Shown here in pieces: positions 30,502-64,000 of a stretch of DNA of 64,000 bases. Source of the DNA: Mytilus californianus (lineage: Eukaryota); assembly GCF_021869535.1 (NCBI RefSeq), contig NW_026262593.1, positions 14,508,001 through 14,572,000 on the forward strand, written 5' to 3'. The stretch's first letter is position 1; every line of letters begins with the position of its first letter. The translations under genes and the position numbers were made by a program. The notes beneath the pieces were generated by a model, which was given only the letters and a program-made list of their open reading frames with translations, had not been told where the DNA came from and did not search any database.

Positions 30502-32262
30502 TTATCGATACACAATTTTATACATTGCGGCAAATTTTCCGTTCCGATTGCTTACCAGTAGAACGGAGTTTTCTTTGTCAATATAAATAGCTTGAGGACG
30601 TTCTAGTCCAACACTTTTCCCAAGTAGTATCCGAATTTTATTTCTATCAGGAGAAATAACTACAATGCAATGATTATCACTGCACGCGACGAAAATATTA
30701 CCATATTTGTCCGTTGTTACGGTCTGAGGCCCTCTCATGTACTCATTTTGGTACGTCCACATCAACGTACCCGTTACAGAAACGCAATACAACAAATGTT
30801 TCTTAGGGTCTGTGTAGTAAATGCTGTCTGAACCGATGTGGAAGTTTTCTAGCCTCGACTTGATAGTTGTACTCTTGATCCTGTTTCCAAAGTAATCTAA
30901 TTCCAGTAGCTCGTTGCCTTTCATGCCAACAAAAATAGCATAGTCATCACTACAAAGTCCCCATCCCGACTTTTGTAATGGAATCGTGTCTATAATATCC
31001 CCATTCATACAGTTAATAAGTTTCACTTCATTTTGGTCGGGATATGTGACAGCGATGGTTGTTCCATCTAACTGAGTTACGTCCCATGGATCGCCAGTTA
31101 TTTTTATTTCTTTTAGATATTTCCCTAAAGCGTTGAATAAATAGAGATGACCATTTTTGTAGGACGACTCGGCCACCATTATTTTTTTGTCGATTAACCT
31201 AATAATACTAGAAATTATACCAAGTTGTCCAACAGGAATTGATATTTTCCTATGAAAAAGTAGTGAGATTTTCCTTACATCAATTTCGTGTCGAATTGCT
31301 TCAGGGATTTGAGTTAGTGATGTTTTACCGCTTTTTAAAGTAATTTCTCTTGATGATCTTGGTGTTGTAAGAGATCTAGATCGAACCACTGGATGTAAAG
31401 CAGATTTATGCGCAGTCACTACATTTATTTTACCGAACGATGTAATTTTACTCATGATGAGTTTGACACTGGGGGAAGTTTCAAAAGAAATATCCACATC
31501 TACGGTCGTATCACTCGTTTGCAAGTACTGCAAGTAACTTTTGCTTGATTCCAGCTGGGATTCTGTATGTCTAATGCCATTGAATGCTTGTATATCAGTG
31601 GCATGCAATTTTATGCCCTTCAGATCTTTTTGTAGTGAAACCAAATTATCGCGCCTCTCGTTTACTTCTCGAAGAACAGCATCAATCTTTGAGTTCTCGA
31701 GAGATTCAATTACTTGTAAATCGTTTGATATTTTGTCCTCCAGTTTGTCTAAATGTTCGTTAAACTGTGTTCTTAATGTCAATATTTCACTTTTAATTCG
31801 TGCTTCTTCCTCTGTGATTCTATTCAAATTATTAGACCGACTTCTTGCCACCTTTTCTAAGTCTCCTAGCACACCTTCGATATCTCTATCAAGTTCATGA
31901 AAGGCAGACGACGACTTGACTGAAGCAGCCACACTTTCTAACGGCGTCACATCGATACATTTATGATGGTCAGTAAGGACACACTGCATACAACATTGGA
32001 CCTTATGAGATGGGCAATATAGTTCTAATTTCCGTTTGTGCTCGGTACAGTCGGGGTTGATCGTGTGAATGAAAGATGGAAGTTTTTCATACTGATTGGC
32101 GTCTATTGTTGTATGACCACGTGACATTTTCATCCGTTTGTGGTGGTCAACACAATCATCACAAAGTCCTTCTTCACACTCTAAGCACCATCTAGTTGAT
32201 TTAGACTTTTTACGACTTATTGAGCATGGACCACAGAAAAGCTCCATGTTTTCAGTTGCCAT
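30502..32262 (-). CDS. RING-less TRIM-like protein: B-box1, B-box2, coiled coil, C-terminal NHL-like beta-propeller; 586 aa, single coding exon
   Basis: B-box1 CGPC...WCLECEEGLCDDCVDHH...H; B-box2 CTEH...YCPSHKVQCCMQCVLTDHHKC; heptad-rich middle region; NHL-like repeats (GPQTVTTDKYGNIFVA, RPQAIYID). A splice acceptor TTTTATCTTATTTGACAG at 32294 places the likely start at MATENMELFC (32262) rather than at the ORF-track start 32331. Confidence 0.93.
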   Translation of the reverse strand: MATENMELFCGPCSISRKKSKSTRWCLECEEGLCDDCVDHHKRMKMSRGHTTIDANQYEKLPSFIHTINPDCTEHKRKLELYCPSHKVQCCMQCVLTDHHKCIDVTPLESVAASVKSSSAFHELDRDIEGVLGDLEKVARSRSNNLNRITEEEARIKSEILTLRTQFNEHLDKLEDKISNDLQVIESLENSKIDAVLREVNERRDNLVSLQKDLKGIKLHATDIQAFNGIRHTESQLESSKSYLQYLQTSDTTVDVDISFETSPSVKLIMSKITSFGKINVVTAHKSALHPVVRSRSLTTPRSSREITLKSGKTSLTQIPEAIRHEIDVRKISLLFHRKISIPVGQLGIISSIIRLIDKKIMVAESSYKNGHLYLFNALGKYLKEIKITGDPWDVTQLDGTTIAVTYPDQNEVKLINCMNGDIIDTIPLQKSGWGLCSDDYAIFVGMKGNELLELDYFGNRIKSTTIKSRLENFHIGSDSIYYTDPKKHLLYCVSVTGTLMWTYQNEYMRGPQTVTTDKYGNIFVACSDNHCIVVISPDRNKIRILLGKSVGLERPQAIYIDKENSVLLVSNRNGKFAAMYKIVYR

Positions 32263-32839
32263 GTTGATGGGAACATCTACCTTATTTGGAACTCTGTCAA
32301 ATAAGATAAAAATATTGATATTCATAATCAAACCAATTAAGAAAGTTACAGTCTTGTCGGCACAGTTCGTTTGATTTCTTTAAGTCATAAAAATGATATT
32401 CTTAAATCAGATTTTAAAAATACATAGTTTATTTTTGCAGTCTATATTGTATATGTATTATACGAGCTCTGACATTTAATTTCAGAATTTTTGCTTAAGT
32501 AATCACAAAGTCGTCCATTATGTCTAATGATCAAAATATTAGCAAGCTAAATAATTGGTAACTGTTTGACCATTGGGCAGCAACTTGTCAGATACTCTGT
32601 TCGTAATTCTAATAACATCATTTTAATAGTTTGGTCAAGTATCAATTTTAGATGAAAATAGTTGTAAAAATTAGAAAAAATAAGATAAAACAGAACTTTT
32701 GCGGCCAAAAATTTATTGAAAAGCAGCATTTCAGTTGAATCATTAAATGACTACTTTTGCATCCTTTCAGATTTAAAAAAAGAAGAAATCGCTAATTGAC
32801 AATGTAAAAGAAATCTTAAATATGACTGTCTTCGCTTAC

Positions 32840-35450: not shown

Positions 35451-36374
35451 ATATGAAAACTCTCTGTGATATACTAAAATATATAGATCTAAACATTTTA
35501 TTTAGCTATTCGTATCATCAGGTTAAAACAAAATGTTCTAAATGCTCGAGATTAAAAAATATTTGAACATCCATAACCTGAAACAAACGTTCAACAGATG
35601 ACAAAAAAAAAAAAAAAAAAGGAACAAAAATATAGTAAAACCCGGTAAAGGAACAAAATATAGTAAAACCCGGTCAAGGAACCAGAGCTATGCATGAGTT
35701 TTTCTCAGTCAATTAACACAATGTATAATATCTCTCCCATGAAGACAATTAAAACAGGATATATCGTTACCTGTAATGTAGATATTATTCAATACCAAGA
35801 TATAATATAAATAATATCACTGACTTTTTTACATATTACAATTTCTAAAAAATCAAAAACGAAGTAGACGAAAAAGGTATGATTTCAACTTGACAGTCAC
35901 AAACGTTAAATGACGACGATGGTCCTATTACTGTGTATACATAACAACTTGTGCGATTTACTGGAGTACCAGTATCTTATAATAAGCTGACTTTAATGTT
36001 TAATAGTTGGTAAATGCACTATCCAGGTGTCTCAATGTCTGTATTGCATAGTTTTACGACATGTAGATCTAGATAGGCAAAAGGGGTGTTTTGCAAGCAC
36101 GTCAATCTGGTTTAACCCTCTCAAATTGTATGCATAGGACATCATTCGTAAATATAAATTAACATGCAGACATCTTATACGTTCAGGTATTTCACATCCA
36201 ATCTTTTATGGTAATATTCTTTACACAGCACAAAAATGTCGGCATTCACCTCAAAAGCTAATCAAACTTTTAAACAGACTTATTCGGAAGGGATATAATT
36301 ACGATACTGTTCTCAAGTCATTAAGGATTGCATATTTTGGTATTGACATTGATTCACTCATAGGGTTTTTGCAT

Positions 36375-37012
36375 CGGAAATAAACACATTTATTCTAAAA
36401 CCAGTTGTTGACATGGGTTATGTTCTTCTCATATATTTTATGATGGTATGATACTAAACCCCTAACAAGAGGGATTGTACTTGATTTTCATATGATGAAG
36501 ACATAATCTTTCAATCAGTTTAATTGAGGTCTGGAGCTGGAATGTCAGTAACTGCTAGTAGTCCTTTGTTAATTTATGTATCATTGTCATTTTGCTTCGT
36601 TTCTTTTGTTACCTATTCTGACATCGGACTCGGACTTCTTTTTACTGTGTGTATCGCTGTGTGTTTTTTTATTCTACATTGGCTAGAGGTATAGGGGGAG
36701 GGTTGAGATCTCACAAAACATGTTTAACCCCGCCGCATTTTTGCGCCTTTCCCAAGTCAGGAGCCTCTGGCCTTTGCTAGTCTTGTATGTTTTTTTTAAT
36801 TTTAGTTCATTTATATGTTTTGGAGTTTAGTATGACGTCCGTTTTCACTGAACTAGTACACATTTTTATTTAGGGGCCAGCTGAGGACCATCTCCGGGTG
36901 CGGGATTTTCTCGCTGCGTTGAAGACCCATTGGTGGCCTTCGTCTGTTATTTGCTCTTTGGCCGGGTTGTTTTCTCTTTGACATATTCCCCATTTCCATT
37001 CTCAATTTTATT
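36375..37012 (-). repeat. Interspersed repeat family B, long copy
   Basis: Includes the reverse complement of 16679-17092. Confidence 0.85.
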
Positions 37013-40765: not shown

Positions 40766-43700
40766 TTATACTAGAAACACATCAGTCATTATGTTGGATC
40801 TATTTCCGAATAACGATTTTGGAAAAGGATCATATCCAAATAATTTGAAGTCATTATGATACACATTCTGCAACTTGTACATTAAAGTAAGAGGAATAGT
40901 GTTATACGCTTGTATAAAAAGTTTCCGTCTTTGTACTGAAAGATTGTCCTTTTTGGATATTTGGTGTGTGGTCGAAATAATAGTTAGTAATTTTGATAAC
41001 AATATGTGTTGCGATTCTTTCTTATTTAAGGGGATAGATTTATTCTCAGAAATTATCCCCCTATACTGTAGCTTCCTCCAAATTCGTTGCAAACCAGTAT
41101 ACGGATTCATGCATTTTTTAGACTCGTGTCGAAAAGCAATAAAAGCTTGAACTGTATCATAAATGGCATCATATTTATACTCATCGCTAAAATTTTGTGT
41201 AATGTAAGGGCTTGAGTTTATTTGAAATTTAGCAAAAATATTGACTGTATCATTTAGAAAATTTTCCATTTTGCCAATATAATGATAATTGACTTGACAT
41301 GGTCTACAGATGGAATGGATGGGTATAAAATGATCGTCTAATTTTTCTATTGGGGTTTGAATGATGTATTCCACAAGGTCTCTGAAAGTAACAGCACTAC
41401 CACACGAGGGGTTTTTACCAACTGTTTTCATAATTATGACACCTAGTGTTTTCCAAAAATACGGATTAGGTGAATATAATTTATCAATGTACGCTGACAA
41501 AATTCGTGAATAAGGATTTCTAGTGAACATGAAACTTCTGGTTTCTGTTAATATGTTATACGTTCCATTCAAACTATGCTTTGCACACGAAACACGATAT
41601 TTGCTCTGTTCATCCTGTGGTTTTATACGAAATGGGGATAATTTAATGTTTCTTTGTAAATAGGCGAGAAGGCGCTTCCAAAATGTTGATCCTCCCTTAT
41701 AAACTCTACAATAAGCAAGTTGCTTGCTGAATAGAGGCATTATACTGTTCTTAAAAACGGCATCCATTTTAGTTTCATTAAGACTTTCTGCATCGCAAAG
41801 ATCTTTTGGGAAATGGTAACCATCTTTCCAAGACCTCTTTGTAATATCTGTCTAAAAAGAAAATGAAAATAGTCTTTGATCGTTTTCTTTCAATCGATTT
41901 ATGACTTTTGAACAGCAGTATACCACTGTTGCCTTTATTTGAGAGCGTTGTCGAATACTAGTATAATATTATTACCAAATTGAATATTATAATGACTAGA
42001 AGGACTATTTTGCCATACAAATATTTTTTTTATATAAAAAACCTTATTTTGCTTTTTGTTTTCCCCGTTTTGAGTAATAAGCATGTTTCGGAATCTATCA
42101 TACAGTGTGGTGAAATATATACTTATCAGTCAATCAAGCATTTCATTATCATATAAATGTATTACAATGTGAAGTTAGCAGTATCCTTTAACTTTTTTTT
42201 TTACTTTCCGCTATATAGATGATGTTCTTTCACTAAATAATTCAAAATTTGGTGACTATGTTGAACGCATCTATCCCATTGAACTTAAGATAAAGGATAC
42301 AACAGATACAGTTAAGTCTGCCTCATATCTTGACTTACATCTAGAAATTGACAATGAGGGTCGGTTGAAATAAAAACTTTACAACAAAATAGATGATTTC
42401 AGCTTCCCAATTGTGAACTTTCCATTTCTATGTAGCAACATTCCAGTAGCGCCTGCATACGGAGTATATATCTCCCCGTTGATACGATATTCCAGGGCTT
42501 GTATTTCCTATCATGATTTCCTCGATAGAGGGTTGCTGCTCACAAGGAAGCTATTACACCAAGAGTTCCAAGTGGTGAAGTTGAAATCATCCCTTCGTAA
42601 GTTTTACGGACACCATCACGAGTTGGTTGACCGTTATGGTATATCCGTTTCACGAATGATAGCGGATATGTTCCTAATGTCGTCACTACGATCCCGCTCC
42701 GTTCCCTCTTTCCGAATGTGACCTACCGAATTAGACTTATTACCGGGTTTGTACTAACATAAGTAACACGACGAGTGCCACATGTGAAGCAGGATCTGCT
42801 TACCCTTCGGGAGCACCTGATATCTCCACCAGTTTTTGGAGTGGTTCGTGTTGCTCAGTCTTTAGTTGTCTATGCTTTGTTTTGTGTACTATTGTTTATT
42901 TGTCGGTCTTTTTCTTTTTTAGCCATGACGTTGTCAGTTTATTTTCGCCTTATGAGTTTGAATGTCCCTCTGGTATCTTTCGCCTCTCTTTTATCGTAGG
43001 ACATGTAGAAAAAACCGTCCGTTCGGAAAAAAATCTTAACTTAAGTAGTTTTAAGCATATCAGCCGTGACTAACTGGGTGGGGGTGCATTAATTGTCAAT
43101 ATATATATTTTAATTCATACTTCATTAGTGCTCATTCAATCAAAATCAGACGATTACAGCAAATTTACTATGTTCAGTTATGTGCTCCTCACCTCTGTTG
43201 TATGATGTTGATAATTCAATACGAGATAGGAGTCGTGTTTGGTGAATTTAGAATGATTGTGATACCACGTTAAATACTCCTTCACACCTTGTTCACCTAA
43301 AAAAGATTAAAAAACATATGTTATAGGCCAAGTTAAGAAAGCAAATTGTGTGACAAGTGGTAAAGTTCTTTGAAAATTTGAATTTTCCATTAAATTAGAA
43401 CAATGCATATTTTAAGAAACAATGCAAAAAATGTTTTTATTTTAATATTCTACTGTATGCAAATTGCCGTTTTCATGCTGAACTGATACCTGGCAAACAA
43501 ATTTAAATTTCATCACGATACCATAAAGTAGTAAATGAGTCTGAGATATGAATCAAGTGTTCGTTTTACTTGAAATAAAAGCCCCTTATTAGCATAACCC
43601 TGCCTCTGCCTATTATGTCAAATTCTATTGCTGTTACGGGCAAATGTTCTCTCGATTTACAAAATTACGAGTGTAGCAATCTCGACTTACACCAATAAAT

Positions 43701-46616
43701 CGGTATAAATAATTGATGTAAACTATTTTGAATGTTAGTAGATTCAGTTTGCGATTTACATTTCAACCTCTTAACAGTGCACATCAATGTTAGTTACCGC
43801 CTACGAAGAGAACAAATTCAATCCTATAACGTTGTAATCCACGTTTATTGAAAAATCCCTTTCAACTTTCAAATTAGTGTAAAATTGAAAAACATCATGC
43901 ATATTTCATGCTGTTTTGTCGCAGTACATTGTCTGTTGTGCAGTTGGAAAACCCTGATGTATCAATCCTGGACTGCCGTTGTGTTGAGTGAACCAGCAGT
44001 ATTTTGCCTGTCCCTTGCAGATTAAGATTTATGGGACCACTGCGAAAGTAGCGAGATTGTGTTCCATTTGACATTATATTGTCGTGCAATTGCACCCTCG
44101 GACTCTAAGACTTAAGGACGTTTAAGAGCGATATTCCGTGCAGCTATTGAAACTTAAAAAGAGAGGAGATACAAAGAGTGCAATACAAATCCACCAAAAC
44201 AGACAATACCTAGGCAAAAAACCCCGAGGAAACGAATGTTAACAATATAGAAGCATTATACAGAAAAGTAAAGAGTTAGCAATACGAAACTCACCTATAA
44301 CCGGCGAAAACGCGGGTGCTGTGGAGGGGTAAGCAGTTCCTTGTCCTCTGGTGGTTTCCGCAGTTTTACTCATAGCAAGTTAAAATGTCGCATTCGTTTC
44401 ACATTGCATGTGAAGTTACCGTCACAGGGAGTACTAATTACCAAGAAAAAGCAAAGGATGCAAAAATGTATGCAACGTTTATGATTTAACGTGGATTACA
44501 ACGTTATAGGATTGAATTTGCTCTCTTCGTAGGCGGTAACTAACATTGATGTGCACTGTTAAGAGGTTGAAATGTAAATCGCAAACTGAATCTACTAACA
44601 TTCAAAAGAGTTTACATCAATTATTTATACCGATTTATTGGTGTAAGTCGAGATTGCTACACTCGTAATTTTATAAATCGAGTGAAGCGGTTTTGTCAAG
44701 ATCAAGAAACAGAGGACGGAATAGTGGTTAACAAAAGTGAAACATATCCGTGGACATCGATCCATGACCCATATATTCCATAAAGCTCGATGCACATTGC
44801 ATGTGAAGTTACCGTCACCGGGAGTACTAATTACCAAGAAAAAGTAAAGGATGTAAAAATGTATGCAACGTTTATGATTTATTTAGTGGAAATCTAGAAG
44901 AATAAAAAAAAGTATAATAAAAATACCGAACTCAATTTGTGATTTCCAGTTATTCTAAATCTCAAAGTGGAACATTAGCTTATAAACAAACACACTTGTT
45001 CTCTTAATTGCCACAGCTGAAATGTGTCATAATGCATGTAGCAAATTTATCGAGCGGTTTACATAAGAATTTGAAACTTCTGTTCGATGAAATGGAAATC
45101 ACCAGTAGAACTTCATATAAATACATTTTAGTTCATATACTACCTTTAGTGGTATTTTAAGGGGTTTTTTTTTTCAATATTCGTGGACAATGATTTTCCT
45201 TTCCTTATGATTTGTTTTTCTTCTTTTTCTTCTTTTCCTTCTTTTCCTTATTTATCGTTCTTGTTATTTAACTTTAGTTTTCATTTTCAATTTACATTTT
45301 ATCAACCGGAGAGCAAGTCTCATAATGGTATCGATGTTATTATTCTGGTCATGTGATTTTTTTCAACTAGAAAATTGACATTTTCAGCAACGGCAATGAC
45401 GCCACGAAATCGAAGGCGTAAAGACATTTTATATATTTACCATGCTCGACCAAATATATCATTTGATACGGCAGGTTTGAATCTTCACTACGTTATTCGT
45501 TTAAGGCTGAACATGTAAAATGTCCTTGATAATTTGATTGGCAAAGATAAAAAAGTGCCGCGGCAGTCACACAAGCAAAAACATATATTCTATGGTTTAT
45601 TTATGACATGTGTGTGCCCTCTGTCGGTAGAAAAACGCTTCGGAGGCATCTAATATACCAAAACAGTTAGTATTTTTTATACGTATATTTTCAAATAAAA
45701 ATGCAGCGAGTTACTTCTACACTTCAAATAGAGATGTATCTGTTGAAACTTTTTTTCCCAAACGTTCGGTAATATAATGTCTGATAAGTGGAAATTCCTA
45801 ATATTTTCCCATATAAAAGGTCTCAGCATTAACAAACCACGTAATGATTATCAACAATGAAGAAAACATTTTATAATGATTAAGATTATAACACAATGTT
45901 GACTGCTGTACCACAATTTTTTACCATTTCAACCGATTATGTCTGTTTGGTTTGCTCACACATTGTTGTCAATACAATTGAATTTTATGCGACTGTCATA
46001 CAAGTGAGAGGTTTAGCTAGCTATAAAACTAGATTTAATCCACCATTTTCTACATAAGGAAATGCCTGTATCAAGAGAGTAATATGACAGTTGTTTTCCA
46101 ATCGTTCAAATGTTTTTGAGCGTTTGATTTTGCCATTTGACAAGGGACTTTCCGTTTTGAATTTTCCTTGGAGTACAGTATTTTTGATATTTTACTTTTT
46201 AACAATATCATGCGTCCGAAGCTCATTTCTAAATTTACCTTTATCAGTAACACTTAAACTCAAAGTTTTGAAATGTCTGGATGTATGAATAACTGAAAAC
46301 ATGAGAAACTATAATACCATTAGGCACCACAATAGCCAAATTCATATAAGGTCAACTTACCCGAGGGAGTTGAAAGGTTGAATCAACTAAGAAATAAACA
46401 TACCCTACAACTTAATAAAAACTAGCAAGGAATTCATGTGTAAAAATGACGGTTACAATTTTGATTGGTATATACATCAATGAATTCTTTTCTTTGATAT
46501 AAGGATATGTTAAACAAATATAATTTACCTCGAAACATTAGTAGTATATTCAATGTTGTTAAAATACCACACCAGACTAAAAGCATTAAAAACACACGGA
46601 AAAAGTTTCGAGCCAT
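40766..46616 (-). CDS. Golgi type II carbohydrate sulfotransferase (HNK-1ST/CHST8-14-like, Sulfotransfer_2 family), about 425 aa, 3 coding exons
   Basis: Exons (minus) 46616-46529 (MARNFFRVFLMLLVWCGILTTLNILLMFR signal anchor; acceptor at 46650; an in-frame ATG also at 46634), 43296-43193 (stem) and 41851-40766 (catalytic). Phases 1 and 0 are consistent. PAPS-binding motifs CRVYKGGSTFWKR (5'-PSB) and RNPYSRILSAYIDK (3'-PB), plus DDHFIP and YHYIGKME. Exact orthology not determined. Confidence 0.9.
42200..42995 (+). mobile_element. Penelope-like reverse transcriptase 3' fragment with non-coding tail, decayed, in a sulfotransferase intron (antisense)
   Basis: FTFRYIDDVLSLNN...ASYLDLHLEID...LYNKIDDFSFPIVNFPFLCSNIP..PAYGVYIS.LIRYSRAC contains the RT YIDD motif. 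In-frame TAA at 42371. The Penelope-like assignment is from recalled family motifs. Confidence 0.8.
43651..44881. repeat. Complex local rearrangement: 195-bp inverted duplication plus 88-bp direct duplication
   Basis: 43651-43845 is the reverse complement of 44488-44682. 44400-44488 is repeated at 44794-44881. Confidence 0.92.
45880..46235 (-). repeat. Interspersed repeat family C copy
   Basis: Reverse complement of 60430-60735. Confidence 0.8.
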
Positions 46617-48030: not shown

Positions 48031-48364
48031 ATCTCAACATGCTTAAATAATTCATGAACTTTTTCCTTGATTCTTGAATTCTGTAAAAAAAAAAAAAACC
48101 ACCAGTTTGGTTAATTATATGTATGTCTTAATAATTAAACTAATACAAACGTATTTAGAATATATCTTTATGATTTGTCATTGAAATTACACATTTTATG
48201 GGTGTTATGTTTTTACCAATCTTTTAATATAACTCAAACTTGTGTCAATCCTCTGGAAAAGACCAGTGGCAATAAGAAAGACATAAGAACTATCCTTTTT
48301 AGAAAGTCTTCTTTTTAGAAAGTGTCGAATGTTCAAAAACACTTTTTACGGAAAACAAATGTAA

Positions 48365-48940
48365 AAATAAAAAAGAAGATGTGGTATGATTGCCAATGAG
48401 ACAACTCTCCACAAGAGACCAAATGACACAGAAATTAACAACTATAGGTCACCGTACGGCCTTCAACAAAGCCCATACCGCACAGTCAGCTATAAAAGGC
48501 CCCGAAATGACAATGTAAAACAATTCAAACGAGAAAAGTAACGGCCTTATTTATGTACAAAAAATGAACGAAAAACAAATATGTAACATATAAACAAACG
48601 ACAACCACTGAATTACAGGCTCCTGACTTGGGACAGGCACATACATACATAATGGGGCGGGGTTAAACATGTTAGCGGGATCCCAACCCTCCCCCTTACC
48701 TGGGACAGTGGTGTAACAGTACAACATAAGAACGAACTATAAAAATCAGTTGAAAGAGGCTTAACTCATCAGATGGATAAAAATACAAATACTACAAATA
48801 CAAGTGGGCGTGGCCGGGTACTTGTACACCCAAACAACAAAAAGACACTAAGTACAGATCTGAGAGTACTCGCAATTACTGACAGCTAGTTCTAAGCCAC
48901 TAACAACTAATAAAAAAAATCATGCATCTAAGACTAAATA
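48365..48940 (+). repeat. Interspersed repeat family A, near full-length copy
   Basis: AAGAAGATGTGGTATGATTGCCAATGAGACAACTCTCC...CCTGACTTGGGACAGGCAC...ATGCATCTAAGACTAAA. Confidence 0.9.
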
Positions 48941-50775: not shown

Positions 50776-53700
50776 ACTAGTGTCAAGCTATCCAGCAATT
50801 CTTTTTATTAAAAGCTGTCCTGCAATTCGTCATCCTGCAATTTCGTTTGGAAAACTACTTGAGCGACAATTTCATTTTTCTTTAAAATCATAGTTTTTGA
50901 CTTTTTTGTTCGAAAACAAGATTTTTATATCCCATTAACAAAATTCTAACTTTAGTTTGCAGATTTCTAACTAATATTTACGGTTTTCTAATTAGTATTT
51001 ACAATAAAAAAAAACCATGATGACAATTCAAACAAAGTATTATCTGTTTGGGTCCAGGATGTGATTCATATTAACGCATGTTAAACCCATATTTGCGATT
51101 TTCAAAACTCATCTTAACGATCGACTAAAAATATAGAATGTTCATGTAAATGAAATTTTTCATGGTATACCGACAATACAACTTCTATTTGAAACTGGAT
51201 CACCCACTTTCCAACCCATTGCCTCGGCAGTTCTGTATGGCTAGGGATTATAGACTCTGCTCTAATGAATAGATAATGGATAGTAATACGGCGGGACGGT
51301 AAAGAATTTCTGGGTTAAGCATTCTTAAAGGCCGGAAACTTCGTCCGCAACACGGGGAAAAAAACCTAATTCGATAAAATACGCATTGGCGACACCCACT
51401 ATCCAACCCATTGTCTCGGTTGTTCTTTATGGCTAGTGATTATAGAGGCTGCCATAATCAATAGCTATTAGATAGTACTACAACGTGAGGGTAAAGAATT
51501 TTCTGGGGTAAGCATTCTTAAAGGCCGAAAATTTCGTCCGTAACACGGAAAAAAGTCAAATTTGATAAAATACGCATTGGGCAATTTCCAACCCATTGCC
51601 TCGGCATTTCTGTATGGCTAGGGGTTAAAGACTCTGCTCTAATGAATAGCTATTGGATAGAACTACAGCGGGAGGGTAAAGAATTTCTGGGTTAAGCATT
51701 CTTAAAGGCCGAAAATTTCGTCCGAAACATGGAAATAAAGCCTAATTCGATAAAGTACGCATTGGCGACACCCACTTTCCAACCCATTGTCTCGGTTGTT
51801 TTTTATGGCTAGGGATTATAGACGCTGCCATAATCAATAGCTATTAGATAGAACTACAACGTGATGGTATAGAATTTCTGGGGAAGGCATTCTTAAAGGC
51901 CGAAAATTTCGTCCGTAACACGGAAATAAAGCCTATTTCGATACAATACGCATTGGGCAATTTCCAACCCATTGCCTCGGCAGTTCTGTATGGCTAGGGG
52001 TTATAGACTCTGCTCTAATGAATAGCTATTGGATAGAACTACAGCGGGAGGGTAAAGAATTTCTGGGTTAAGCATTCTTAAAGGCCGGAAACTTCGTCCG
52101 AAACATGGAAATAAAGCCTTATTCGATAAAGTACGCATTGGAGACACCCACTTTCGTACCCATTGTCTCGGTTGTTTTTTATAGCTAGGGATTATAGACG
52201 CTGCCATAATCAATAGCTATTAGATAGTACTACAACGTGAGGGTAAAGAATTTCTGGGGTAAGCATTCTTAAAGGCCGAAAAAATCGTCCGTAACACGGA
52301 AAAAAGTCAAATTTGATAAAATACGTATTGAGCAATTTCCAACCCATTGCCTCGGCAGTTCTGTATGGCTAGGGGTTATAGACTCTGCTCTAATGAATAG
52401 CTATTGGATAGAACTACAGCGGGAGGGTAAATAATTTCTGGGTTAAGCATTCTTAAAGGCCGAAAATTTCGTCCGAAACATGGAAATAAAGCCTATTTCG
52501 ATAAAGTACGCATTGGCGACACCCATTTTCCAACCTATTTTCTCGGTTGTTCTTTATAATTAGGGATTATAGACGCTGCCCTAATGAATAGCTATTGGAT
52601 AGTATTACAACAAGAGGGTAAATAATTTCTGGGGTAAGCATTCTCAAAGGCCGAAAATTTCGTCCGTAACACAGAAAAAAAAGTCAAATTTGACAAAATA
52701 CGCATTGGGCACTTTCCAAATCATTGCCTCGGTAGTTCTGTATGGCTACGGGGTTATAGACTCTGCTCTAATAAATAGCTATTGGATAGATCTACAGCGA
52801 GAGTGTAAAGAATTTCTGGGGTAAGCATTCTTAAAGGCCGAAAATTTCGTTCGAAACATGGAAATAAAGACTAATTCAATTAAATACGCATTGGCGACAC
52901 CCACTTTCCAACCCATTGTCTCGGTTGTTCTTTATGGCTAGGGATTATAGACGCTGCCCTAATGAATAGCTATTGGATAGTACTACAACTTGAGGGCAAC
53001 AAATTTTTGGGGTAAGCTGTCTAAAAGGCCGAAAATTCGTCCGTAACACAGAAAAAAAAGTCAAATTTGATAAAATACGCATTGGGCAATTTCCAAACCA
53101 TTGCCTCGGCAGTTCTTTATGGCTAGGGATTATAGACGCTGCCCTAATGAATATCTATTGGATAGTACTAAAACGGGAGGGTAAAGAATTTCTTGGATAA
53201 GCATTCTTTAAGGCCGGAAACTTCGTCCGTAACACGGGGAAAAAAGTCAATTTGATAAAATACGCATTGGGGTCACTCACTTTCCCATCCATTGCCTCGG
53301 CAGTTCTGTATGGCTAGGGTTTATAGACTCTGCTCTAATAAATAGCTATTGAATAGTACTTCAACGAGAGGGCAAAGAATTTCTGGAGTAAGCATTCCTA
53401 GAGGCCGAAAATTTCGTCCGAAACATGGAAATAAAACCTAATTCGATAAAATACGCATTGGCGACACCCACTTTCCAACCCATTTTCTCGGTTGTTCTTT
53501 ATGGCTAGTGATTATAGAGGCTGCCATAATCAATAGCTATTAGATAGTACTACAACGTGAGGGTAAAGAATTTCTGGGGTCAGCATTCTTAAAGGACGAA
53601 AATTTCGTCCGTAACACGGAAAAAAGTCAAATTTGATAAAATACACATTGGGCAATTTCCAACCCATTGCCTCGGCAGTTCTGTATGGCTAGGGGTTATA

Positions 53701-56700
53701 GACTCAGCTCTAATGAATAGCTATTGGATAGAACTACAGCGGGAGGGTAAAGAATTTCTGGGTTAAGCATTCTTAAAGGCCGAAAATTTCGTCCGAAACA
53801 TGGAAATAAAGCCTAATTCGATAAAGTACGCATTGGCGACACCCACTTTCCAACCCATTGTCTCGGTTGTTTTTTATGGCTAGGGATTATAGACGCTGCC
53901 ATAATCAATAGCTATTAGATAGTACTACAACGTGATGGTATAGAATTTCTGGGGAAGGCATTCTGAAAGGCCGAAAATTTCGTCCGTAACACGGAAATAA
54001 AGCCTAATTCGATACAATACGCATTGGGCAATTTCCAACCCATTGCCTCGGCAGTTCTGTATGGCTAGGAGTTATAGACTCTGCTCTAATGAATAGCTAT
54101 TGGATAGAACTACAGCGGGAGGGTAAAGAATTTCTGGGTTAAGCATTCTTAAAGGCCGAAAACTTCGTCCGAAACATGGAAATAAAGCCTTATTCGATAA
54201 AGTACGCATTGGAGACACCCACTTTCGTACCCATTGTCTCGGTTGTTTTTTATAGCTAGGGATTATAGACGCTGCCATAATCAATAGCTATTAGATAGTA
54301 CTACAACGTGAGGGTAAAGAATTTCTGGGGTAAGCATTCTTAAAGGCCGAAAATTTCGTCCGTAACACGGAAAAAAGTCAAATTTGATAAAATACGCATT
54401 GAGCAATTTCCAACCCATTGCCTCGGCAGTTCTGTATGGCTAGGGGTTATAGACTCTGCTCTAATGAATAGCTATTGGATAGAACTACAGCGGGAGGGTA
54501 AATAATTTCTGGCTTAAGCATTCTTAAAGGCCGAAAATTTCGTCCGAAATATGAAAATAAAGCCTATTTCGATAAAGTACGCATTGGCGACACCCACTTT
54601 CCAACCTATTGTCTCGGTTGTTCTTTATAATAAGGGATTATAGACGCTGCCCTAATGAATAGCTATTGAATAGTATTACAACGTGAGGGTAAATAATTTC
54701 TGGGGTAAGCATTCTCAAAGGACGAAAATTTCGTCCGTAACACAGAAAAAAAAGTCAAATTTGACAAAATACGCATTGGGCACTTTCCAAATCATTGCCT
54801 CGGTAGTTCTGTATGGCTACGGGGTTATAGACTCTGCTCTAATAAATAGCTATTGGATAGATCTACAGCGAGAGTGTAAAGAATTTCTGGGGTAAGCATT
54901 CTTAAAGGCCGAAAATTTCGTTCGAAACATGGAAATAAAGCCTAATTCAATTAAATACGCATTGGCGACACCCACTTTCCAACCCATTGTCTCGGTTGTT
55001 CTTTATGGCTAGGGATTATAGACGCTGCCCTAATGAATAGCTATTGGATAGTACTACAACGTGAGGGCAACTAATTTTTGGGGTAAGCTGTCAAAAAGGC
55101 CGAAAATTCGTCCGTAACACAGAAAAAAAAGTCAAATTTGATAAAATACGCATTGGGCAATTTCCAAACCATTGCCTCGGCAGTTCTTTATGGCAAGGGA
55201 TTATAGACGCTGCCCTAATGAATATCTATTGGATAGTACTAAAACGGGAGGGTAAAGAATTTCTTGGATAAGCATTCTTAAAGGCCAAAAACTTCGTCCG
55301 TAACACGGGGAAAAAAGTCAAATTTGATAAAATACGCATTGGGGTCACCCACTTTCCGACCCATTGCCTCGGCAGTTCTGTATGGCTAGGAATTATAGAC
55401 TCTGCTCTAATAAATAGCTATTGGATAGTACTACAACGAGAGGGCAAAGAATTTCTGGGGTAAGCATTCCTAGAGGCCGAAAATTTCGTCCGAAACATGG
55501 AAATAAAGCCTAATTCGATAAAATACGCATTGGCGACACCCACTATCCAACCCATTGTCTCGGTTGTTCTTTATGGCTAGGGCTTATAGCCGCTGCCCTA
55601 ATGAATAGCTATTGGATAGTACTACAACGTGAGGGAAATAATCTCTCGGGTAAGCATTCTTAAAGGCCAAAAATTTCGTCCGTAACACGGAAAAAAAGTC
55701 AAATTTGATAAAATACGCATTGGGTAATTTCCAACCCATTGCCTCGGTAGTTCCTTTATGGCTAGGGGTTATAGACTCTGCTCTAATGAATAGCTATTGG
55801 ATAGTACTACAGCGGGAGGGTAAAGAATTTCTGGGGTAAGCATTCTTAAAGGCCGAAAATTTCGCTCGAAACATAGAAATAAAGCCAAATTCGATTAAAT
55901 ACGCGTTGGGGACATCCACTTTCCAACCCATTGTCTCGGTTGTTCATTATGGTTAGGGATTATAGACGCTGCCCTAATGAATAGGTATTGGATAGAACTA
56001 CAATTTGAGAATAAAGAATTTCTGGGGTAAGCATTCTGAAAGGCCGAAAATTTCGTCCGTAACACGGAAAAAAGTCAAATTTGATAAAATACGCATTGGG
56101 CACTTTCCAACCTATTGCCTCGGCAGTTCTGTATGGTTAGGGATTATAGACTCTGCTCTAATAAATAGCTATTGGATAGTACTACAGCGGGAGGGTAAAG
56201 AATTTCTGGGGTAAGCATTCTTAAAGGCCGAACATTTCGCTCGAAACATAGAAATAAAGCCAAATTCGATTAAATACGCGTTGGGGACATCCACTTTCCG
56301 ACCCATTGTCTCGGTTGTTCTTTATGGCTAGGGATTATAGACGCTGCCCTAATGAATAGCTATTGGATAGAACTACAACTTGAGGATAAAGAATTTCTAG
56401 GGTAAGCATTCTGAAAGGCCGAAAATTTCGTCCGTAACACGGAAAAAAGTCAAATTTGATAAAATACGCATTGGGTATTTTCCAACCTATTGCCTTGGCA
56501 GTTCTGTATGGTTAGGGATTATAGACTCTGCTCTAATAAATAGCTAATGGATAGAAATACAGCGGGAGGGTAAAGAATTTCTGGGGTAAGCATTCTTAAA
56601 GGCCGAAAATTTCGCTCGAAACATAGAAATAAAGCCAAATTCGATTAAATACGCGTTGGCGACACCCACTTTCCGACCCATTGTCTTGGTTGTTCTTTAT

Positions 56701-58293
56701 GGCTAGGGATTATAGACGCTGCCCTAATGAATAGCTATTGGATAGTACTACAACGTGAGGGCAACAAATTTTTGGGGTAAGCTGTCTAAAAGGCCGAAAA
56801 TTCGTCCGTAACACAGAAAAAAAAGTCAAATTTGATAAAATACGCATTGGGCAATTTCCAAACCATTGCCTCGGCAGTTCTTTATGGCTAGGGATTATAG
56901 ACGCTGCCCTAATGAATATCTATTGGATAGTACTAAAACGGGAGGGTAAAGAATTTCTTGGATAAGCATTCTTAAAGGCCGAAAACTTCGTCCGTAACAC
57001 GGGGAAAAAAGTCAAATTTGATAAAATACGCATTGGGGTCACCCAATTTCCGACCCATTGCCTCGGCAGTTCTGTATGGCTAGGGATTATAGACTCTGCT
57101 CTAATAAATAGCTATTGGATAGTAATACAACGAGAGGGCAAAGAATTTCTGGGGTAAGCATTCCTAGAGGCCGAAAATTTCGTCCGAAACATGGAAATAA
57201 AGCCTAATTCGATAAAATACGCATTGGCGACACCCACTATCCAACCCATTGTCTCGGTTGTTCTTTATGGCTAGGGATTATAGCCGCTGCCCTAATGAAT
57301 AGCTATTGGATAGTACTACAACGTGAGGGTAAATAATCTCTCGGGTAAGCATTCTTAAAGGCCAAAAATTTCGTCCGTAACACGGAAAAAAAGTCAAATT
57401 TGATAAAATACGCATTGGGTAATTTCCAACCCATTGCCTCGGAAGTCATGTGTGGCTTGGGGTTATAGACTGCACTAATGAATAGCTATTGGATAGTACT
57501 ACAGCGGGAGGGTAAGGAATTTCTGGGGTAAGCATTCTTAAAGGCCGAAAATTTCGCTGGAAACATAGAAATAAAGCCAAATTCGATTAAATACGCGTTG
57601 GGGACATCCACTTTCCGACCCATTGTCTCGGTTGTTCATTATGGCTAGGGATTATAGACGCTGCCCTAATGAATAGCTATTGGATAGTACTACAACTTGA
57701 GGATAAAGAATTTTTAGGGTAAGCATTCTGAAAGGCCGAAAATTTCGTCCGTAACACGGAAAAAAGTCAAATTTGATAAAATACGCATTGGGTATTTTCC
57801 AACCTATTGCCTTGGCAGTTCTGTATGGTTAGGGATTATAGACTCTGCTCTAATAAATAGCTAATGGATAGAACTACAGCGGGAGGGTAAAGAATTTCTG
57901 GGGTAAGCATTCTTAAAGGCCGAAAATTATCTCGAAACATAGAAATAAAGCCAAATTCGATTAAATACGCGTTGGGGACACCCACTTTCCGACCCATTGT
58001 CTCGGTTGTTCTTTATGGCTAGGGATTATAGACGCTGCCCTTAATGAATAGCTATTGGATAGTACTACAACGTGAGGATAAAGAATTTTTGGCCTTTAAA
58101 AAGCCTTACCCCAGAAATTATTTACCCTCACGTTGTAATTTCGAACAAAAAAAGTCAAAAACTATGATTTTAAAGAAAAATAAAATTGTCGCTCAAGTAG
58201 TTTTCCAAACGCAATTGCAGGATGACGAATTGCAGGATAGCTTTTTATAAAGAGAATTGCAGGATGAGAATTGCTGGATAGCTTGACACTAGT
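50776..58293. mobile_element. Non-autonomous Mutator/foldback-like TIR element (7518 bp) carrying a satellite array
   Basis: TIRs at 50776-50915 and 58139-58293 (ACTAGTGTCAAGCTATCCAGCAATTC..., with internal ATCCTGCAATTC subrepeats). Perfect 9-bp TSD AATTGTTTC at 50767-50775 and 58294-58302. No transposase ORF. Confidence 0.92.
51200..58090. repeat. Satellite array of about 36-37 monomers alternating about 184 and 191 bp, with 11-mer and 9-mer higher-order repeats
   Basis: GGCC spacing 193, 184, 191, 185, 191, 184, 191. An identical ORF recurs 2071 bp apart (52001 and 54072). The TACTAAAACGGG marker recurs at +2071 and then +1694. Confidence 0.97.
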
Positions 58294-58620: not shown

Positions 58621-60429
58621 TTACTAATAATAACTTAATCCAATCAAATTGCCTAAGACTCAATAACAATGATCGGTCCACATCAAAATAAGTAATAGGG
58701 GTAAACTGGGTAGGGAGAAAATGACAGATATTTTAAGTTCATTTTTTGTAATAACGAATAAAAATTTGTCAACCAAAAGTTTTGCTATAATTTCAAAAAC
58801 ATGTTCAGTATTGGTATAGTTTTCTGATCTTTCATTTGCGTATTTAAGGTACTAAAAAGTTTTGTCTTCAAAAGTCTACATAGTTATTGATTTTATACAG
58901 ACAAATCGCCCTTTTATAACATTTAATGTTTCACATATAATACATGGATACAAAGTAAAATCATCTTTTAAAACACTGCAAAAAATTTCATTCTGATTGG
59001 TATAGTGGTATTGTCATAAAGTGCGATGACATGAACCGTGGTATAGCAAACATTGAATTCCTTCACAAAATGTTACCACGCATTATAGCAGGTCGGGAAC
59101 TCTACCTTATATGGATATGCATAAATTAGTATACTAATATCCTCACAAATATAACTGTTTATTTACGTAAGACGCATTTTTTACCTGGGTTTTGACCAAT
59201 CCAAAAATAATGATCTTCTGCCATGTATACAAAGGCCGTTGGTTATTTATCACATTTGCAAGAAGCTTTATGTACCTCCCATGTCAAAATTTCATTCTCT
59301 GTACAGCTTATATTTGGTAACATTTGTTATAAACCCCTATCCAAACCAGTTTAAAGTTATAGCTATCATCTCGGATATTGCCAGTCACAGAAATTTCAGA
59401 CCGGTTCCCATCGCTAAAGATGAAAAGGGTAAAATGTCCTTTCTTAAACTTTATTTGCCCACAACAGTATCAATGCAATCAAATTGGGCAATATCCTTCT
59501 TCATAAATCAGTTCACTGGAAAGTTCCGCCTTGCTTTAGACATGGTTTGTCACTCTGTCTTTGACTAATGAGTTTTGATTGTTCTAAAAAAAATTTGTCA
59601 TATTTCGTGTCATGTTTTCAGTGTATCATTCGTATCTACTTATTCTTTATCATCAACATAAATCAATGAATAGAAAGATCGTAAAGGTATTTCTTGATGT
59701 GTTGCTACTTATTTCGTGTAATATGTACTTAATCAATTTTTAAAATGTATAAAGCAAAATTATCTATCAGATCTCCTGGTTCCTCTGATAACTTATACAA
59801 AGTCGAAAACATAGATAGTTGTTTCTTTAATGGTATTTGTTACCAACCAATAGTTCATTGAACTAATACATTTTGAAAAACAAAACATTAATCCAAAGAT
59901 TAAAACGCATTCGAAAACAAACAAGAAAGAGATGATATCGAGGTAGCAATCAAAAATTCGTATACAAACAGACAAAACCATGACCAAAAGAACTCGACAA
60001 AAATAGCAATTTGGACAAAACAGCCATGAAAACTCCTTGATTCAACGATTTTACATAAAATCAACATTGTACAACAAATCTTTTTGCTACAATATATGTA
60101 CAGGAAATAAAGAGAACAGATATTCGTTTAGCTGCAATATAAAATAAAAATACTTTTCCATAACATATGGTGAACATCTTCCACTTCGAGCGACTCCAAA
60201 AGAAATCTTAAACAATGCCTTTGTCATTTGTATAAAGATTTTTTAATTAAATGACACTGGTGTTAATTGAACAAAAACAGTGCAGTTAATCGCAGGCTGT
60301 CTCACATTGATGATTTGCTGTTCCTTGCTTGTTCCGAAACTACAATTATTTGATGTCACATTTAATGACATTGTTTCATTTTCATTGTGAAGTTAAAAAA
60401 TCTACATAAAGTAAAATAACAATAAAAAA

Positions 60430-60735
60430 ACAAACCCGAACTCCATTTGAAATTCAAAATGGAAAGTACTTTATAAAATGGCAAAACCAAAAGCTTAAAC
60501 ACATCAAACGAATGGAAAACAACTATCATATTCTTGACTTGATACAGGCATTTCCCTATGTAGAAAATGGTGGATCAAACTTGGTTTTATCGCTAGCTGA
60601 ACTCTCACTTGTAGGACAGTTGCATAGAATTCCATTATATTGACAACAATGTGTGAGGAAAACAAACAGACATAATAGGTGAAAATGTCAAAAATTGGGG
60701 TACAGCAGTCAACAGTGTAATATAATCTTAATCAA
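60430..60735 (+). repeat. Interspersed repeat family C copy
   Basis: Reverse complement of 45880-46235. Confidence 0.8.
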
Positions 60736-61179
60736 TATAAAACTAATAACTATTTCAACAAAGAAAAACACATTGGCTTATCGACACGCTATAGACAAAG
60801 TACATAAGCAAAAATGAAAGACAAGAATAGAAAATTGACCATAGCACAAAAACACAACACGGGATGTATAAGTACCGAGCCACGCCAAAAGTATTACTAA
60901 AAAATGGAATAAACAGTAACGGTTAAAAATGTACAAGGACAAATAAAAAGACTACTATAACACGTAACTAAGACGCTCCTGATAACTGATGAAGGTAATT
61001 CGAAAACGCGCTTCGGGCGCACGAAATTAATAAAGTGCTATATTCATTAACAATATTCACTTAAACTTTTAATATATATGATACGAACTTAAGACATCAT
61101 GTTGAATAACCGACAAATAAATGATGACAGAAAAGAAAACCGGTTAATAAAATAACATTTATTGATGTAGGTGAGACTG

Positions 61180-61502
61180 TCATCTATGAAACCGGTAAGC
61201 CGCCTGTCGCCTTGGAAATCGGTAAGATTGTCGTCCAGGAAATCTATACGACTGACGCCTAGGATAATGATGTCTTTTACTACCTGGACATGCCTGTTGA
61301 ATTGATCCTACTTTGTCACACTCGGAACAAACTGTGCAGTTTTGACAGCATCCACATTGAGGTGGTGAATTGCATTCAAAGGGTTCGTCAGCAGGACCTG
61401 CAAAATATATTTATTTTTGTGATATGTAATTTTTATCGTTTTTTATTCTCATATTTTTTCCCGTCTTGACATACGTCAATTCGCCGTCTTCATGACGTAA
61501 AC

Positions 61503-61543
<41 letters not shown>

Positions 61544-61897
61544 CCACTCCCTCCTCCTCCTCATCATCATCCTCATCATCTTCATCATCACCATTTGTAG
61601 TCAAATACTAAATTAATTCTAAAGGAAACCATCACACATTGTTAAAGTTATTACCAGCAGATTTATTTGCTAATATGTATAGTGTCAAAGTCAGCCATAA
61701 AATTTTATCTTATAGCTTTGTTTTTTTTATATATTCACGTTCATTAGGTTCTGGACAAATTTTTAAAATTATTTACATTTTATGAGGTGAAAGGAATGCA
61801 TCAGTTGTCTGAAATAATGTATTAATCTACACACTATTTCTTTTTCATTTTACAAAAACTATATAAAGTTAATCGTACTTACGTGGAAATCCGGCTT
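61180..61897 (-). CDS. 3' part of a small, probably secreted Cys-rich precursor (15-nt microexon plus terminal exon); 5' exon unresolved
   Basis: Microexon 61897-61883 (acceptor TTTTGTACTCTTACAG, donor GTAAGT, phase 1-1) and terminal exon 61397-61180 (acceptor ATATTTTGCAG), with AATAAA 17 nt after TGA. Peptide: (E)AGFPRPADEPFECNSPPQCGCCQNCTVCSECDKVGSIQQACPGSKRHHYPRRQSYRFPGRQSYRFPRRQAAYRFHR*. Confidence 0.75.
61503..61592. repeat. Compound microsatellite (AAT)n followed by (CCT)/(CAT)n
   Basis: Direct reading; lies in the intron between the two exons above. Confidence 0.95.
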
Positions 61898-63001
61898 CTG
61901 TAAGAGTACAAAATATGATTATAGATAATGTACATTACTTTTCAATTGTAAAATATGATTAAGTAACATAGTTACATAAAGACGATCTATATTTAGCAGT
62001 AGGCTTAACATGTTTAATACTCAGTAACCTGTCTAATACTATGTGTGCATCAATGGTATTTCCTACAGATAGATGTTGAACCGGATCAGGTAGAAAGATT
62101 TCGGATGTGCTGAATTAAAGTACATGAATATTTATATGACTCCATTTTGGAGAACCAGTCAATGAAACCAGCACCGAATAAAAGCACACACACACATAAA
62201 GCAGCACCAACGAAAATTTTAGAGTCCAAATATTATGATACATTGACACTTACCTGAAGAATTAAGAAATAACAGTTCAAGAAAGGCTTTTATCTTGAAT
62301 CGATCATCCATGCTTTTCATTTTCAGGACAAAAACTAATATTTTGAATAGATTGATAAGAATATAACATGTATCAGACTGAATATAAACATTTTGCAAAC
62401 TAACAAACTGAATTAATGGAACAATACTTAAAAATAGGTAAAACAATAGCACAACATCACTGTGTCGAATGTGTTGTTGGTGGTATATACTTTTAAAATA
62501 CAATATGTTATTCTGAAAACATGAAGAGCAAATTAAAATATCGTAACTTTCCCAACTGTAAATACATTGATTTTTATTGGAATAATTTTTTTATATGCCT
62601 TAATGTTGGTTTTACCTGATGTTTTATTTCATTTTTTCAGAACTTGCTATTCTATAGAAAATCGATTTCCTGTATTATACAATTAAAGCCTTTGTATGAG
62701 GTCGATACGAGTTTATATCGACCTGAGAGAAGCATATTGACTGAGGACTAAGGCTACAATTGTTATGTTATTAATCAACAACTATTGCATGATCAATGTA
62801 AAATTGGGGATTTATAGAATGTATATTTAGTAACTTGCTTTATGCCTTTTGCAATATGCTGTTTTTGACCTACGAAAAGCTATTTGCGTGCAAACTGAGT
62901 AAATACAAATGTACATGTGATCAAGTTTTAACGAATCACAAATTCTTAAAAATATTCGATTAATAATATACATTTTTGTACTTGTATATTGATCTTCTTA
63001 C

Positions 63002-63088
63002 CTACACCAAGTAACTTTACATCAGGGGATCCGCATATTTCACATATATCTTTGAATGCATCAGTTTTGTTTTCAATATTCCTAACCG
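63002..63088 (-). CDS. Candidate internal phase 1-1 exon, gene unknown
   Basis: Acceptor CTTCATATGTTACAG and donor TAG|GTAAGA. The only open frame reads xVRNIENKTDAFKDICEICGSPDVKLLGV. It is phase-compatible with the 61897 microexon, but linkage is unproven. Confidence 0.3.
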
Positions 63089-64000
63089 CTGTAACATATG
63101 AAGTAATGAATGAATTGTTTTTTTCAAAGTACTATAGTACTTGAAATCTTAGATTTTACATACATGTAATACAAGCATCATGTACATCAATATCTGCGTA
63201 TTAAGTAGTATTGAGTGCAACTTAACAAATGTTTTTGAAATTTTTATAGATAAAATATAGCAAAATCATGTAAATCATAGTTTTATCTGTATAAGTATGA
63301 TTTGTGTGGGCTGACTGGTTCGCCCGTTTCGCTACCTTGTTTCACTCTTCAATTTGGACATTCTTTTCTTTTGATAACTTGATATGCTTGGCACATACGC
63401 AACATATCTCCAATAAAAGGGCAAATTAAAAGTTGTATGCATAAGAACCCACAACCTGGTTGAATTATTGTGTTGCAAGACAAAAATTATATATCAGGGA
63501 TGTTCAAAAGCCTATTTTTTACAAAATTTAACACAACTGTCTGTTAATAGCGAATAATTATTTCAAAACTCCGCGTTTAGGAATATTTGAAACACTGAAA
63601 ATCATACGTTAAATGTTTGTCTAAATGGACTTTTATGTCCCTTTCATTGGATTTATGCCATAACAAATATATAAGGAGATAGAACAAAACTTAAAGATGA
63701 ATGACATTTCTAACGTGTTGAAAGTAAATTTATGTTTAAAACGCGTTTAAATGTGCATCAGAAAATTTATCATTTTAAATGTAGCGGATGCAATTTAGAA
63801 TACATTGACCAATCATGACAAAAATTACAAGAAGATTTACATGTCAGCAGTAAATTATCCGACATCCAGAAATTTGTATAATGAACATTAGAACACTTGG
63901 ATTTATGCGCAGCAAATACGTTTTAAAAAAACTGTATTTTCCCATTCTATCAAATTGACGACCTAGTTACTGAAAAATACACGAATAAAAAAAAAAGAAA

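Follow-up and report, generated by a model that had tools for sequence, protein, structure and literature searches.

A Mytilus californianus member of an uncharacterised, Mytilus-restricted protein family with an eight-cysteine module and a periodic polycationic tail

Near one end of a 64,000-nucleotide (nt) stretch of the genome of the mussel Mytilus californianus (assembly GCF_021869535.1, contig NW_026262593.1, positions 14,508,001 to 14,572,000 of the forward strand) lie three short coding exons which together encode a module of eight cysteines followed by a strongly basic, repetitive tail. This whole 64,000-nt stretch is called the window, and its coordinates are used throughout; the entire feature is on the minus strand. 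The three exons (a homologue of exon 6 of the related genes, a microexon and a terminal exon) are almost certainly the 3′ end of a paralogue in a family of secreted multi-domain proteins. The closest annotated protein is VDI16041.1 of M. galloprovincialis, which has 261 residues and is referred to below as P0001. A first-pass annotation of the same DNA, made from the sequence letters, had recognised the last two of the three exons and had proposed either a small neuropeptide-like or toxin-like precursor or a cationic, Arg/Tyr-tailed protein. The parts of the feature are as follows.

63002..63088, minus strand: upstream coding exon of 87 nt, exon-6 homologue, located by tblastn against P0001 residues 141-166
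61883..61897, minus strand: microexon of 15 nt encoding (E)AGFP(R), with an acceptor AG and a gtaagt donor, internal to the protein
61397..61180, minus strand: terminal exon, read from the sequence as two bases of a split Arg codon, 71 codons and a TGA stop
61288..61374, minus strand: acidic eight-cysteine module, isoelectric point (pI) about 4.1, with the pattern C-x5-C-x-CC-x2-C-x2-C-x2-C-x9-C
61183..61287, minus strand: polycationic tail of 35 residues, recognised by composition, autocorrelation and Tandem Repeats Finder
61213..61254, minus strand: two QSYRFP units (61254..61237 and 61230..61213) with Gly-Arg between them
61158..61163, minus strand: AATAAA, candidate polyadenylation signal by its motif, 17 nt past the stop

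The exons were searched one by one, and the codons at their junctions were read by eye. The acceptor AG of the terminal exon occupies 61399-61398 and is preceded by ttttgcag; translation from 61395 gives 71 residues and ends at the TGA at 61182-61180. The cysteines are separated by x5, x1, x0, x2, x2, x2 and x9 residues (codons 61374..61288), and a conserved N-C-T sequon lies within the module. From 61287 to 61183 the tail reads PGS-KR-HHYP-RR-QSYRFPG-R-QSYRFP-RR-QAAYRFH-R-stop. The microexon has cag directly upstream and the donor gtaagt directly downstream; it encodes AGFP and contributes one base to an Arg codon, which is completed at the junction with the terminal exon as C/GT. The frame of the terminal exon contains no ATG, GTG or TTG, and for this reason the exon is missing from the list of open reading frames (ORFs). 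All of this agrees with the first-pass annotation, whose cysteine spacing and repeat tail match the minus strand letter for letter across microexon and terminal exon, and whose exons, reading frame, splice sites and remark on the missed ORF are as it described them.

The extent of the gene is another matter. The 77-residue product of the microexon and terminal exon had been read as belonging to a precursor, with the start of the microexon, (E)A-GFP, likened to a signal-peptidase site; comparison with the relatives supports neither a small precursor nor such a site. The genes of P0001 and P0007, at a M. galloprovincialis locus (L002) and a M. edulis locus (L001) respectively, are 13.6-13.8 kb long and have eight coding exons. 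Homologous 15-nt microexons with like flanks occur in them at L002:20300-20314 and L001:22262-22276, encoding ESGNPR where the window has EAGFPR. The sequence leading into the module is ...FKFVLV-E-SGNP-R-PADKEFEC in P0001 and (E)AGFP(R)PADEPFEC in the window, and in the relatives about 170 residues precede ESGNPR. Since this homologous microexon is internal in Mytilus proteins of about 260 residues, that of the window is internal as well and does not mark a signal-peptidase site. Upstream of it, the exon at 63088..63002 has 57.7% identity to P0001 by tblastn with both cysteines kept, and its length of 87 nt is that of exon 6 in the L001 and L002 genes. Its first two bases complete a split codon, its splice sites are an AG acceptor and a gtaag donor, and it ends in phase 1, so that G/AA with the microexon gives Glu. 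With an internal microexon and a conserved exon of 87 nt before it, the 77 residues form the C-terminal part of a larger protein.

In 63089-64000, tblastn with the relatives detected none of exons 1-5. Intron 5-6 measures 1.2 kb in the relatives, whose genes extend over 10-14 kb, and only 0.9 kb of the window remains past the exon-6 homologue; the five upstream exons, with the signal peptide, therefore probably lie beyond base 64000. A tblastn match of 63843..63778 to the signal peptide of P0001 (E 2.7) was rejected, being not significant, bounded by stops and running across an exon boundary of the relatives.

An exhaustive HMMER search of 1.84 billion representative proteins with the 71-residue exon returned one true match, P0001 (E 1.4e-12, 59% identity), in which exon residues 1-65 align with P0001 residues 175-236. 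The other three matches (P0002-P0004) are unrelated proteins with low-complexity sequence or simple repeats. The 90% cluster of P0001 contains VDI16042.1 of M. galloprovincialis and XP_071144628.1, XP_071144634.1 and CAG2231187.1 of M. edulis, all of them named 'uncharacterized' or 'hypothetical'. Word and profile searches with P0001 and with the alignment added only P0009, a chimeric M. edulis model. No relative outside Mytilus was found among the 1.84 billion proteins or in the word and profile searches. The word-indexed protein search with the 71-residue exon gave no match. Pfam had none for the terminal exon, exon 6 or the relatives; the PDB had none for the 71-residue exon by sequence or for the relatives, and a profile search of it also gave nothing. 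Literature searches for the peptide strings returned nothing relevant. The description of the feature as unrecognised falls short in part, in that the relatives are already annotated, if only as uncharacterised proteins. The family is undescribed in the literature searched and has no Pfam or PDB relative.

Two public models in this group need care. CAG2231187.1 fuses a short M. edulis paralogue to the adjoining long-form gene and skips the microexon; the front half of this model is the only public trace of the short paralogue. P0009, with 387 residues, has exons 2-5 of a family member linked to unrelated sequence. Both look like annotation artefacts, the one a fusion and the other a chimera.

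The long-form relatives are about 260 residues long and consist of a signal peptide, a cysteine-containing N-domain of about 155 residues, the acidic eight-cysteine module and a polycationic tail. Their hydrophobic N-terminus has a mean hydropathy of 2.55 over 12 residues, and they carry 3-4 N-x-S/T sequons. All eight cysteines are invariant in the alignment of the window with P0001, P0005, P0007 and P0008. With VDI16041.1, VDI16042.1, XP_071144634.1 and XP_071144628.1 the window copy shares the cysteine spacing, the N-C-T sequon, a cationic tail of 8-residue period and QSYRFP, which occurs once each in P0001 and P0005; it also shares with these four proteins the 15-nt microexon, the 87-nt exon before it, the intron phases and the genomic neighbours. 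It differs from them in that the identity of the terminal exon is only 59%, in its tail of 35 residues against 48-51, and in having KR after the module and one Gly-Arg.

The terminal exon stands out from its surroundings on several counts. Its G+C content is 45.9%, compared with 26-31% in the flanks, and the window contains no N. It is the sole open frame of the window with eight cysteines in 30 residues in a polar context that does not resemble a membrane segment; the two other frames of the window that reach eight cysteines are hydrophobic junk. Tandem Repeats Finder detects a 24-nt period over 61204-61264. The 5 bases at which one QSYRFP unit differs from the other are all synonymous changes (P about 5e-4 under random placement). 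No second copy or paralogue of the gene was found within the window.

Comparison of the tail in four copies (that of the window and those of relatives) shows which properties are kept. The window tail has a net charge of +11 and a pI of about 12, with 10 Arg, 4 Tyr, 4 Pro and 3 Phe among its 35 residues. The net charge is +11 to +13 in 4/4 tails, with almost no acidic residue, and the tails are rich in Arg, Tyr, Phe, Gln, Ser and Pro; their pI is 11.4-12, against 4.1-4.2 for the module. Autocorrelation at lag 8 is 0.44 in the window and 0.37-0.40 in the long forms, which gives an 8-residue period in three copies. In the repeat, a pair of linker residues, of which the second is almost always Arg, precedes a unit x-S-Y-x-[F/Y]-[P/S], whose first residue varies among Gln, His, Arg, Tyr, Leu and Met. 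The Arg before the unit is mostly kept across the four copies, and about 9 of the 16 junctions between units, as read from the sequences, are dibasic (RR 9 times, SR twice, and GR, PR, KQ, RQ and RL once each). Gly before Arg is found in the window copy only, the relatives having Ser-Arg or Arg-Arg at that position. Rough ratios of nonsynonymous to synonymous change (dN/dS), taken over few sites, rise from 0.22 in exon 6 through 0.4-0.5 in the cysteine module to 0.6 in the tail. P0001 and P0007 have identical modules and N-domains of 87% identity, and their tails differ in both length and sequence. At the DNA level, the 108 nt coding for the cysteine module are the same in P0001 (L002:23362-23469) and P0007 (L001:23588-23695), an identity that may point to strong constraint or to gene conversion.

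The surroundings of the gene are conserved along with it. Two neighbours lie downstream, as follows.

40766-41767, minus strand: sulfotransferase ORF (Pfam Sulfotransfer_2, E 2.4e-34), downstream of the family gene on the same strand
30502-32331, minus strand: uninterrupted TRIM-like ORF of 609 residues with a B-box zinc finger and NHL repeats, syntenic with a 586-residue B-box gene in both M. galloprovincialis and M. edulis

The order family gene, sulfotransferase, B-box/NHL gene is common to the window, M. galloprovincialis (L002) and M. edulis (L003), and the DNA is collinear between the window and the Mytilus loci; the window gene occupies the place in the array beside these two neighbours. 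At the DNA level the sulfotransferase exon shows 88.5% identity to the neighbour of the family gene in both species; identity is 70-80% in intergenic DNA and 68-71% in the terminal exon of the long forms. These values set the source of the window clearly apart from the M. edulis complex, unless it is a very divergent haplotype. Copies of the family are arranged in tandem in both species, the M. edulis array falling within about 140 kb of one chromosome (L001, L003). The best DNA match to the terminal exon (77.7%) belongs to the short paralogue of M. edulis at L001:2584-6993, which has an identical microexon 15-mer and shares CPGSKRH after the module with the window. It differs from the window copy in missing the tripeptide G-C-C, which leaves 6 cysteines, and in having largely lost the repeat from its tail (lag-8 autocorrelation 0.15). 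It also has its own signal-peptide exon and no detectable N-domain exons, where the window has the exon-6 homologue instead.

Several repeats occupy the spaces between these genes. A satellite array of 6.9 kb at 51201-58092, made up of about 36 copies at 81-89% matches and repeating every 188-191 nt or so (375 nt in an alternative scoring), sits between the family gene and the sulfotransferase in a stretch of the window with higher G+C, and makes up much of the approximately 12 kb by which this region exceeds the M. edulis and M. galloprovincialis loci. In the intron between microexon and terminal exon, 61497-61600 holds an (ATA/ATT)n microsatellite followed by a run rich in CCT/CAT; the same trinucleotide run is present in the L001 and L002 genes, but in intron 4-5 and not in the corresponding intron. 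Interspersed repeats at 36144-37012, 16684-17077, 45925-46200, 60401-60742, 48109-48891 and 25087-25557 have several copies in the window and recur at 70-92% identity in the Mytilus loci, both in introns and in flanking DNA. Farther away, an open frame on the plus strand at 11571-11828 contains a WAP four-disulfide-core domain (PF00095, E 4.8e-5, above the gathering score) and is probably an exon of a protease-inhibitor-like gene.

What such a protein might do can be approached from the properties that are kept. Our proposal, held at slightly better than even confidence, is that the Mytilus-restricted family provides a secreted package of a disulfide knob and an intact cationic and aromatic tail with a role in binding. 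The protein would enter the secretory pathway, where the eight-cysteine module would fold into a small disulfide-bonded knob and the tail would stay attached as a flexible, cationic and aromatic 'sticker'. To judge from its composition, the tail could use charge and cation-pi contacts to bind anionic partners: sulfated or acidic polymers of matrix or mucus, for instance, or mineral, byssal matrix or the surfaces of microbes. Selection would then keep the charge, the period and the x-S-Y-x-[F/Y]-[P/S] unit of the tail, and not cleavable copies of a hormone. A secreted protein with an Arg/Tyr-rich tail, the second of the options originally put forward, is in any case a better fit to the data than a small neuropeptide or toxin precursor.

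Several points weigh against this proposal. The 5′ exons and signal peptide of the window copy lie out of view, and the copy is only presumably intact. The KR directly after the cysteine module, in the window and in the short paralogue of M. edulis, is a good convertase site. The QSYRFP motif is kept twice in the window by purely synonymous change and once in P0001, as would be expected of released peptides too; this is the best point for the peptide readings, and it fits a selected binding motif equally well. The binding mechanism itself is deduced from composition, and the structural models are of no help. AlphaFold2 gave a predicted local distance difference test (pLDDT) score of 33 for P0001 with an alignment of 6 rows, and of 50 with no secondary structure for the 71 residues of the window with 5 rows, and both models are unusable because the alignments are shallow.

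Known mussel families offer partial likenesses. Foot proteins, the byssal adhesives of mussels, are secreted, have a high pI, contain Tyr/Arg-rich, repetitive regions of low complexity and include Cys-rich parts; the likeness of the window tail to them is one of composition only. In mussel defensins, mytilins and myticins a cationic Cys-rich peptide is followed by an anionic C-terminal extension (PMC5577615). The module is unlike these, as had been supposed from its cysteine spacing: the polarity is reversed, with a pI of 4.1 for the module and 12 for the tail, and neither Pfam nor the PDB returns a match. The suspicion that the spacing also departs from that of MgCRP-I proves correct against the published consensus C(X3-6)C(X1-7)CC(X3-4)C(X3-5)C, which belongs to peptides with six cysteines, a pre-pro region ending in KR and four exons (PMC4558851). 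The first four cysteines of the window fit C(X3-6)C(X1-7)CC, and both families are secreted and restricted to Mytilus; after the CC, however, the window has x2 and x2, and its cysteines number eight against six. The conserved pre-pro region of MgCRP-I is absent, the module being preceded by the exon-6 homologue and the microexon, and the gene would have about eight exons against four. Myticalins consist of a signal peptide, a Cys-free cationic region, KR and an anionic extension, encoded by three exons, and their mature regions are rich in Pro, Arg and Tyr, with a pI >11 and >10% Arg (PMC5577615). The window resembles them in composition only, through a repetitive Arg/Pro/Tyr cationic region with a pI >11; as families, both are multigenic and lineage-restricted and place a region of opposite charge beside the cationic one. 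The architecture differs, since the cationic region of the window is C-terminal, follows an eight-cysteine module and has no anionic extension. Searches of Pfam, the PDB and, with HMMER, of protein sequences found no sequence similarity to myticalins or to any described family of antimicrobial peptides (AMPs).

Other explanations have been considered beside the proposed binding tail, and two of them have the tail cut from the precursor. If a single cut at KR or at the first RR freed a tail of 30-50 residues rich in Arg, Tyr and Pro, with the acidic module serving to neutralise it, the gene would encode an AMP precursor of reversed polarity. This is unlikely. In its favour, the tails, with pI 11.4-12 and >20% Arg, agree with the physico-chemical description of myticalins (PMC5577615), the adjoining module is acidic at pI 4.1-4.2, and the family is lineage-restricted, tandem and fast-evolving as mussel AMP families are (PMC4558851). 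It is opposed by the absence of KR after the module from the long forms P0001 and P0007, by an architecture and gene structure unlike those of myticalins, and by the lack of sequence similarity to described AMP families. The other processing scheme would make the protein prohormone-like. Multi-copy neuropeptide precursors of molluscs carry short units between basic residues, and the window tail resembles them in its repeated units with basic residues on either side, in the Gln that opens several of these and in its single Gly-Arg. Convertases would cut at KR, RR and R and free QSYRFP-type pyroglutamyl peptides of six or seven residues, one carrying an amide, with the upstream domains acting as a carrier. 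We regard this as quite unlikely. The recurrence of basic residues every 8 residues speaks for it, as do the Gln at the start of most long-form units, the synonymous-only preservation of QSYRFP noted above and the single Gly-Arg. Most of the testable features of a neuropeptide precursor failed to appear, however, and the pyroglutamyl, amidated QSYRFP precursor envisaged in the first-pass annotation is for the most part not borne out. The amidation Gly is confined to the window and replaced in the relatives; neither the Gln at unit starts nor the dibasic pairs are constant, most of them being gone from the short paralogue. Peptide copies would be expected to be better conserved than their precursor, yet the tail is under less constraint than any other part of the protein and evolves faster. 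No orthologues were found in other molluscs, all true relatives among the representative proteins searched being from Mytilus, and a multi-copy, tandem, genus-restricted family attached to a folded region of about 190 residues is unlike the typical conserved single-copy neuropeptide gene. The literature searches, moreover, did not find the peptide strings. A more specific version, in which the tail is a cassette of convertase-released pyroglutamyl Q-S-Y-R-[F/Y]-[P/S] hexapeptides, confined to Mytilus and borne by a precursor of several domains, seems to us similarly improbable; if true, such a hexapeptide family would evolve by gain and loss of units and by turnover of paralogues, an architecture undescribed for molluscan peptides.

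The remaining two explanations concern the gene rather than the fate of its tail. The three exons might be relics of a duplicated family member that is decaying or unexpressed and yields no product. No annotated protein in public sets matches the window copy, exons 1-5 are not in the window, and the 68-71% identity of the terminal exon is no higher than the 70-80% of neighbouring intergenic DNA. Against this, none of the three exons is interrupted, their splice sites are canonical, and their lengths and phases are conserved; dN/dS is below 1 in every part, 8/8 cysteines are kept, and repeat units that differ at synonymous positions only speak for recent purifying selection. The missing exons are, besides, expected outside the window, given an intron of 1.2 kb in the relatives and 0.9 kb of sequence left. 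Decay is accordingly a doubtful explanation, about on a par with the prohormone. A small stand-alone gene is very improbable. It would start at an ATG at 62320, with a first exon 62320..62254 spliced to the microexon, and give a precursor of about 99 residues. Its phase 1 fits and its donor, CAG/GTAAGT, is a perfect consensus, and the short paralogue of M. edulis does have a signal-peptide exon that is phase-compatible with the microexon and terminal exon. This first exon was nevertheless rejected: the signal peptide would be poor, with a weak hydrophobic core of 8 residues that includes a Glu (mean hydropathy 1.77); the G+C content of 31% is intron-like; L001, L002 and L003 have no counterpart of it; and the conserved exon-6 homologue farther upstream offers the same phase.

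On present evidence the feature is an ordinary paralogue, so far unannotated, in an uncharacterised family. It carries a lesson for annotation, in that a 15-nt microexon and a terminal exon free of start codons escape tracks based on ORFs. Mussels possess many lineage-restricted families of secreted proteins, among them antimicrobial peptides, foot proteins and shell proteins, which underlie immunity and adhesion. An acidic eight-cysteine knob joined to a periodic Arg/Tyr polycation would be the reverse of the usual layout of mussel AMPs, and if the tail proves to be adhesive, coacervating or antimicrobial, it would be a new building block for those fields.

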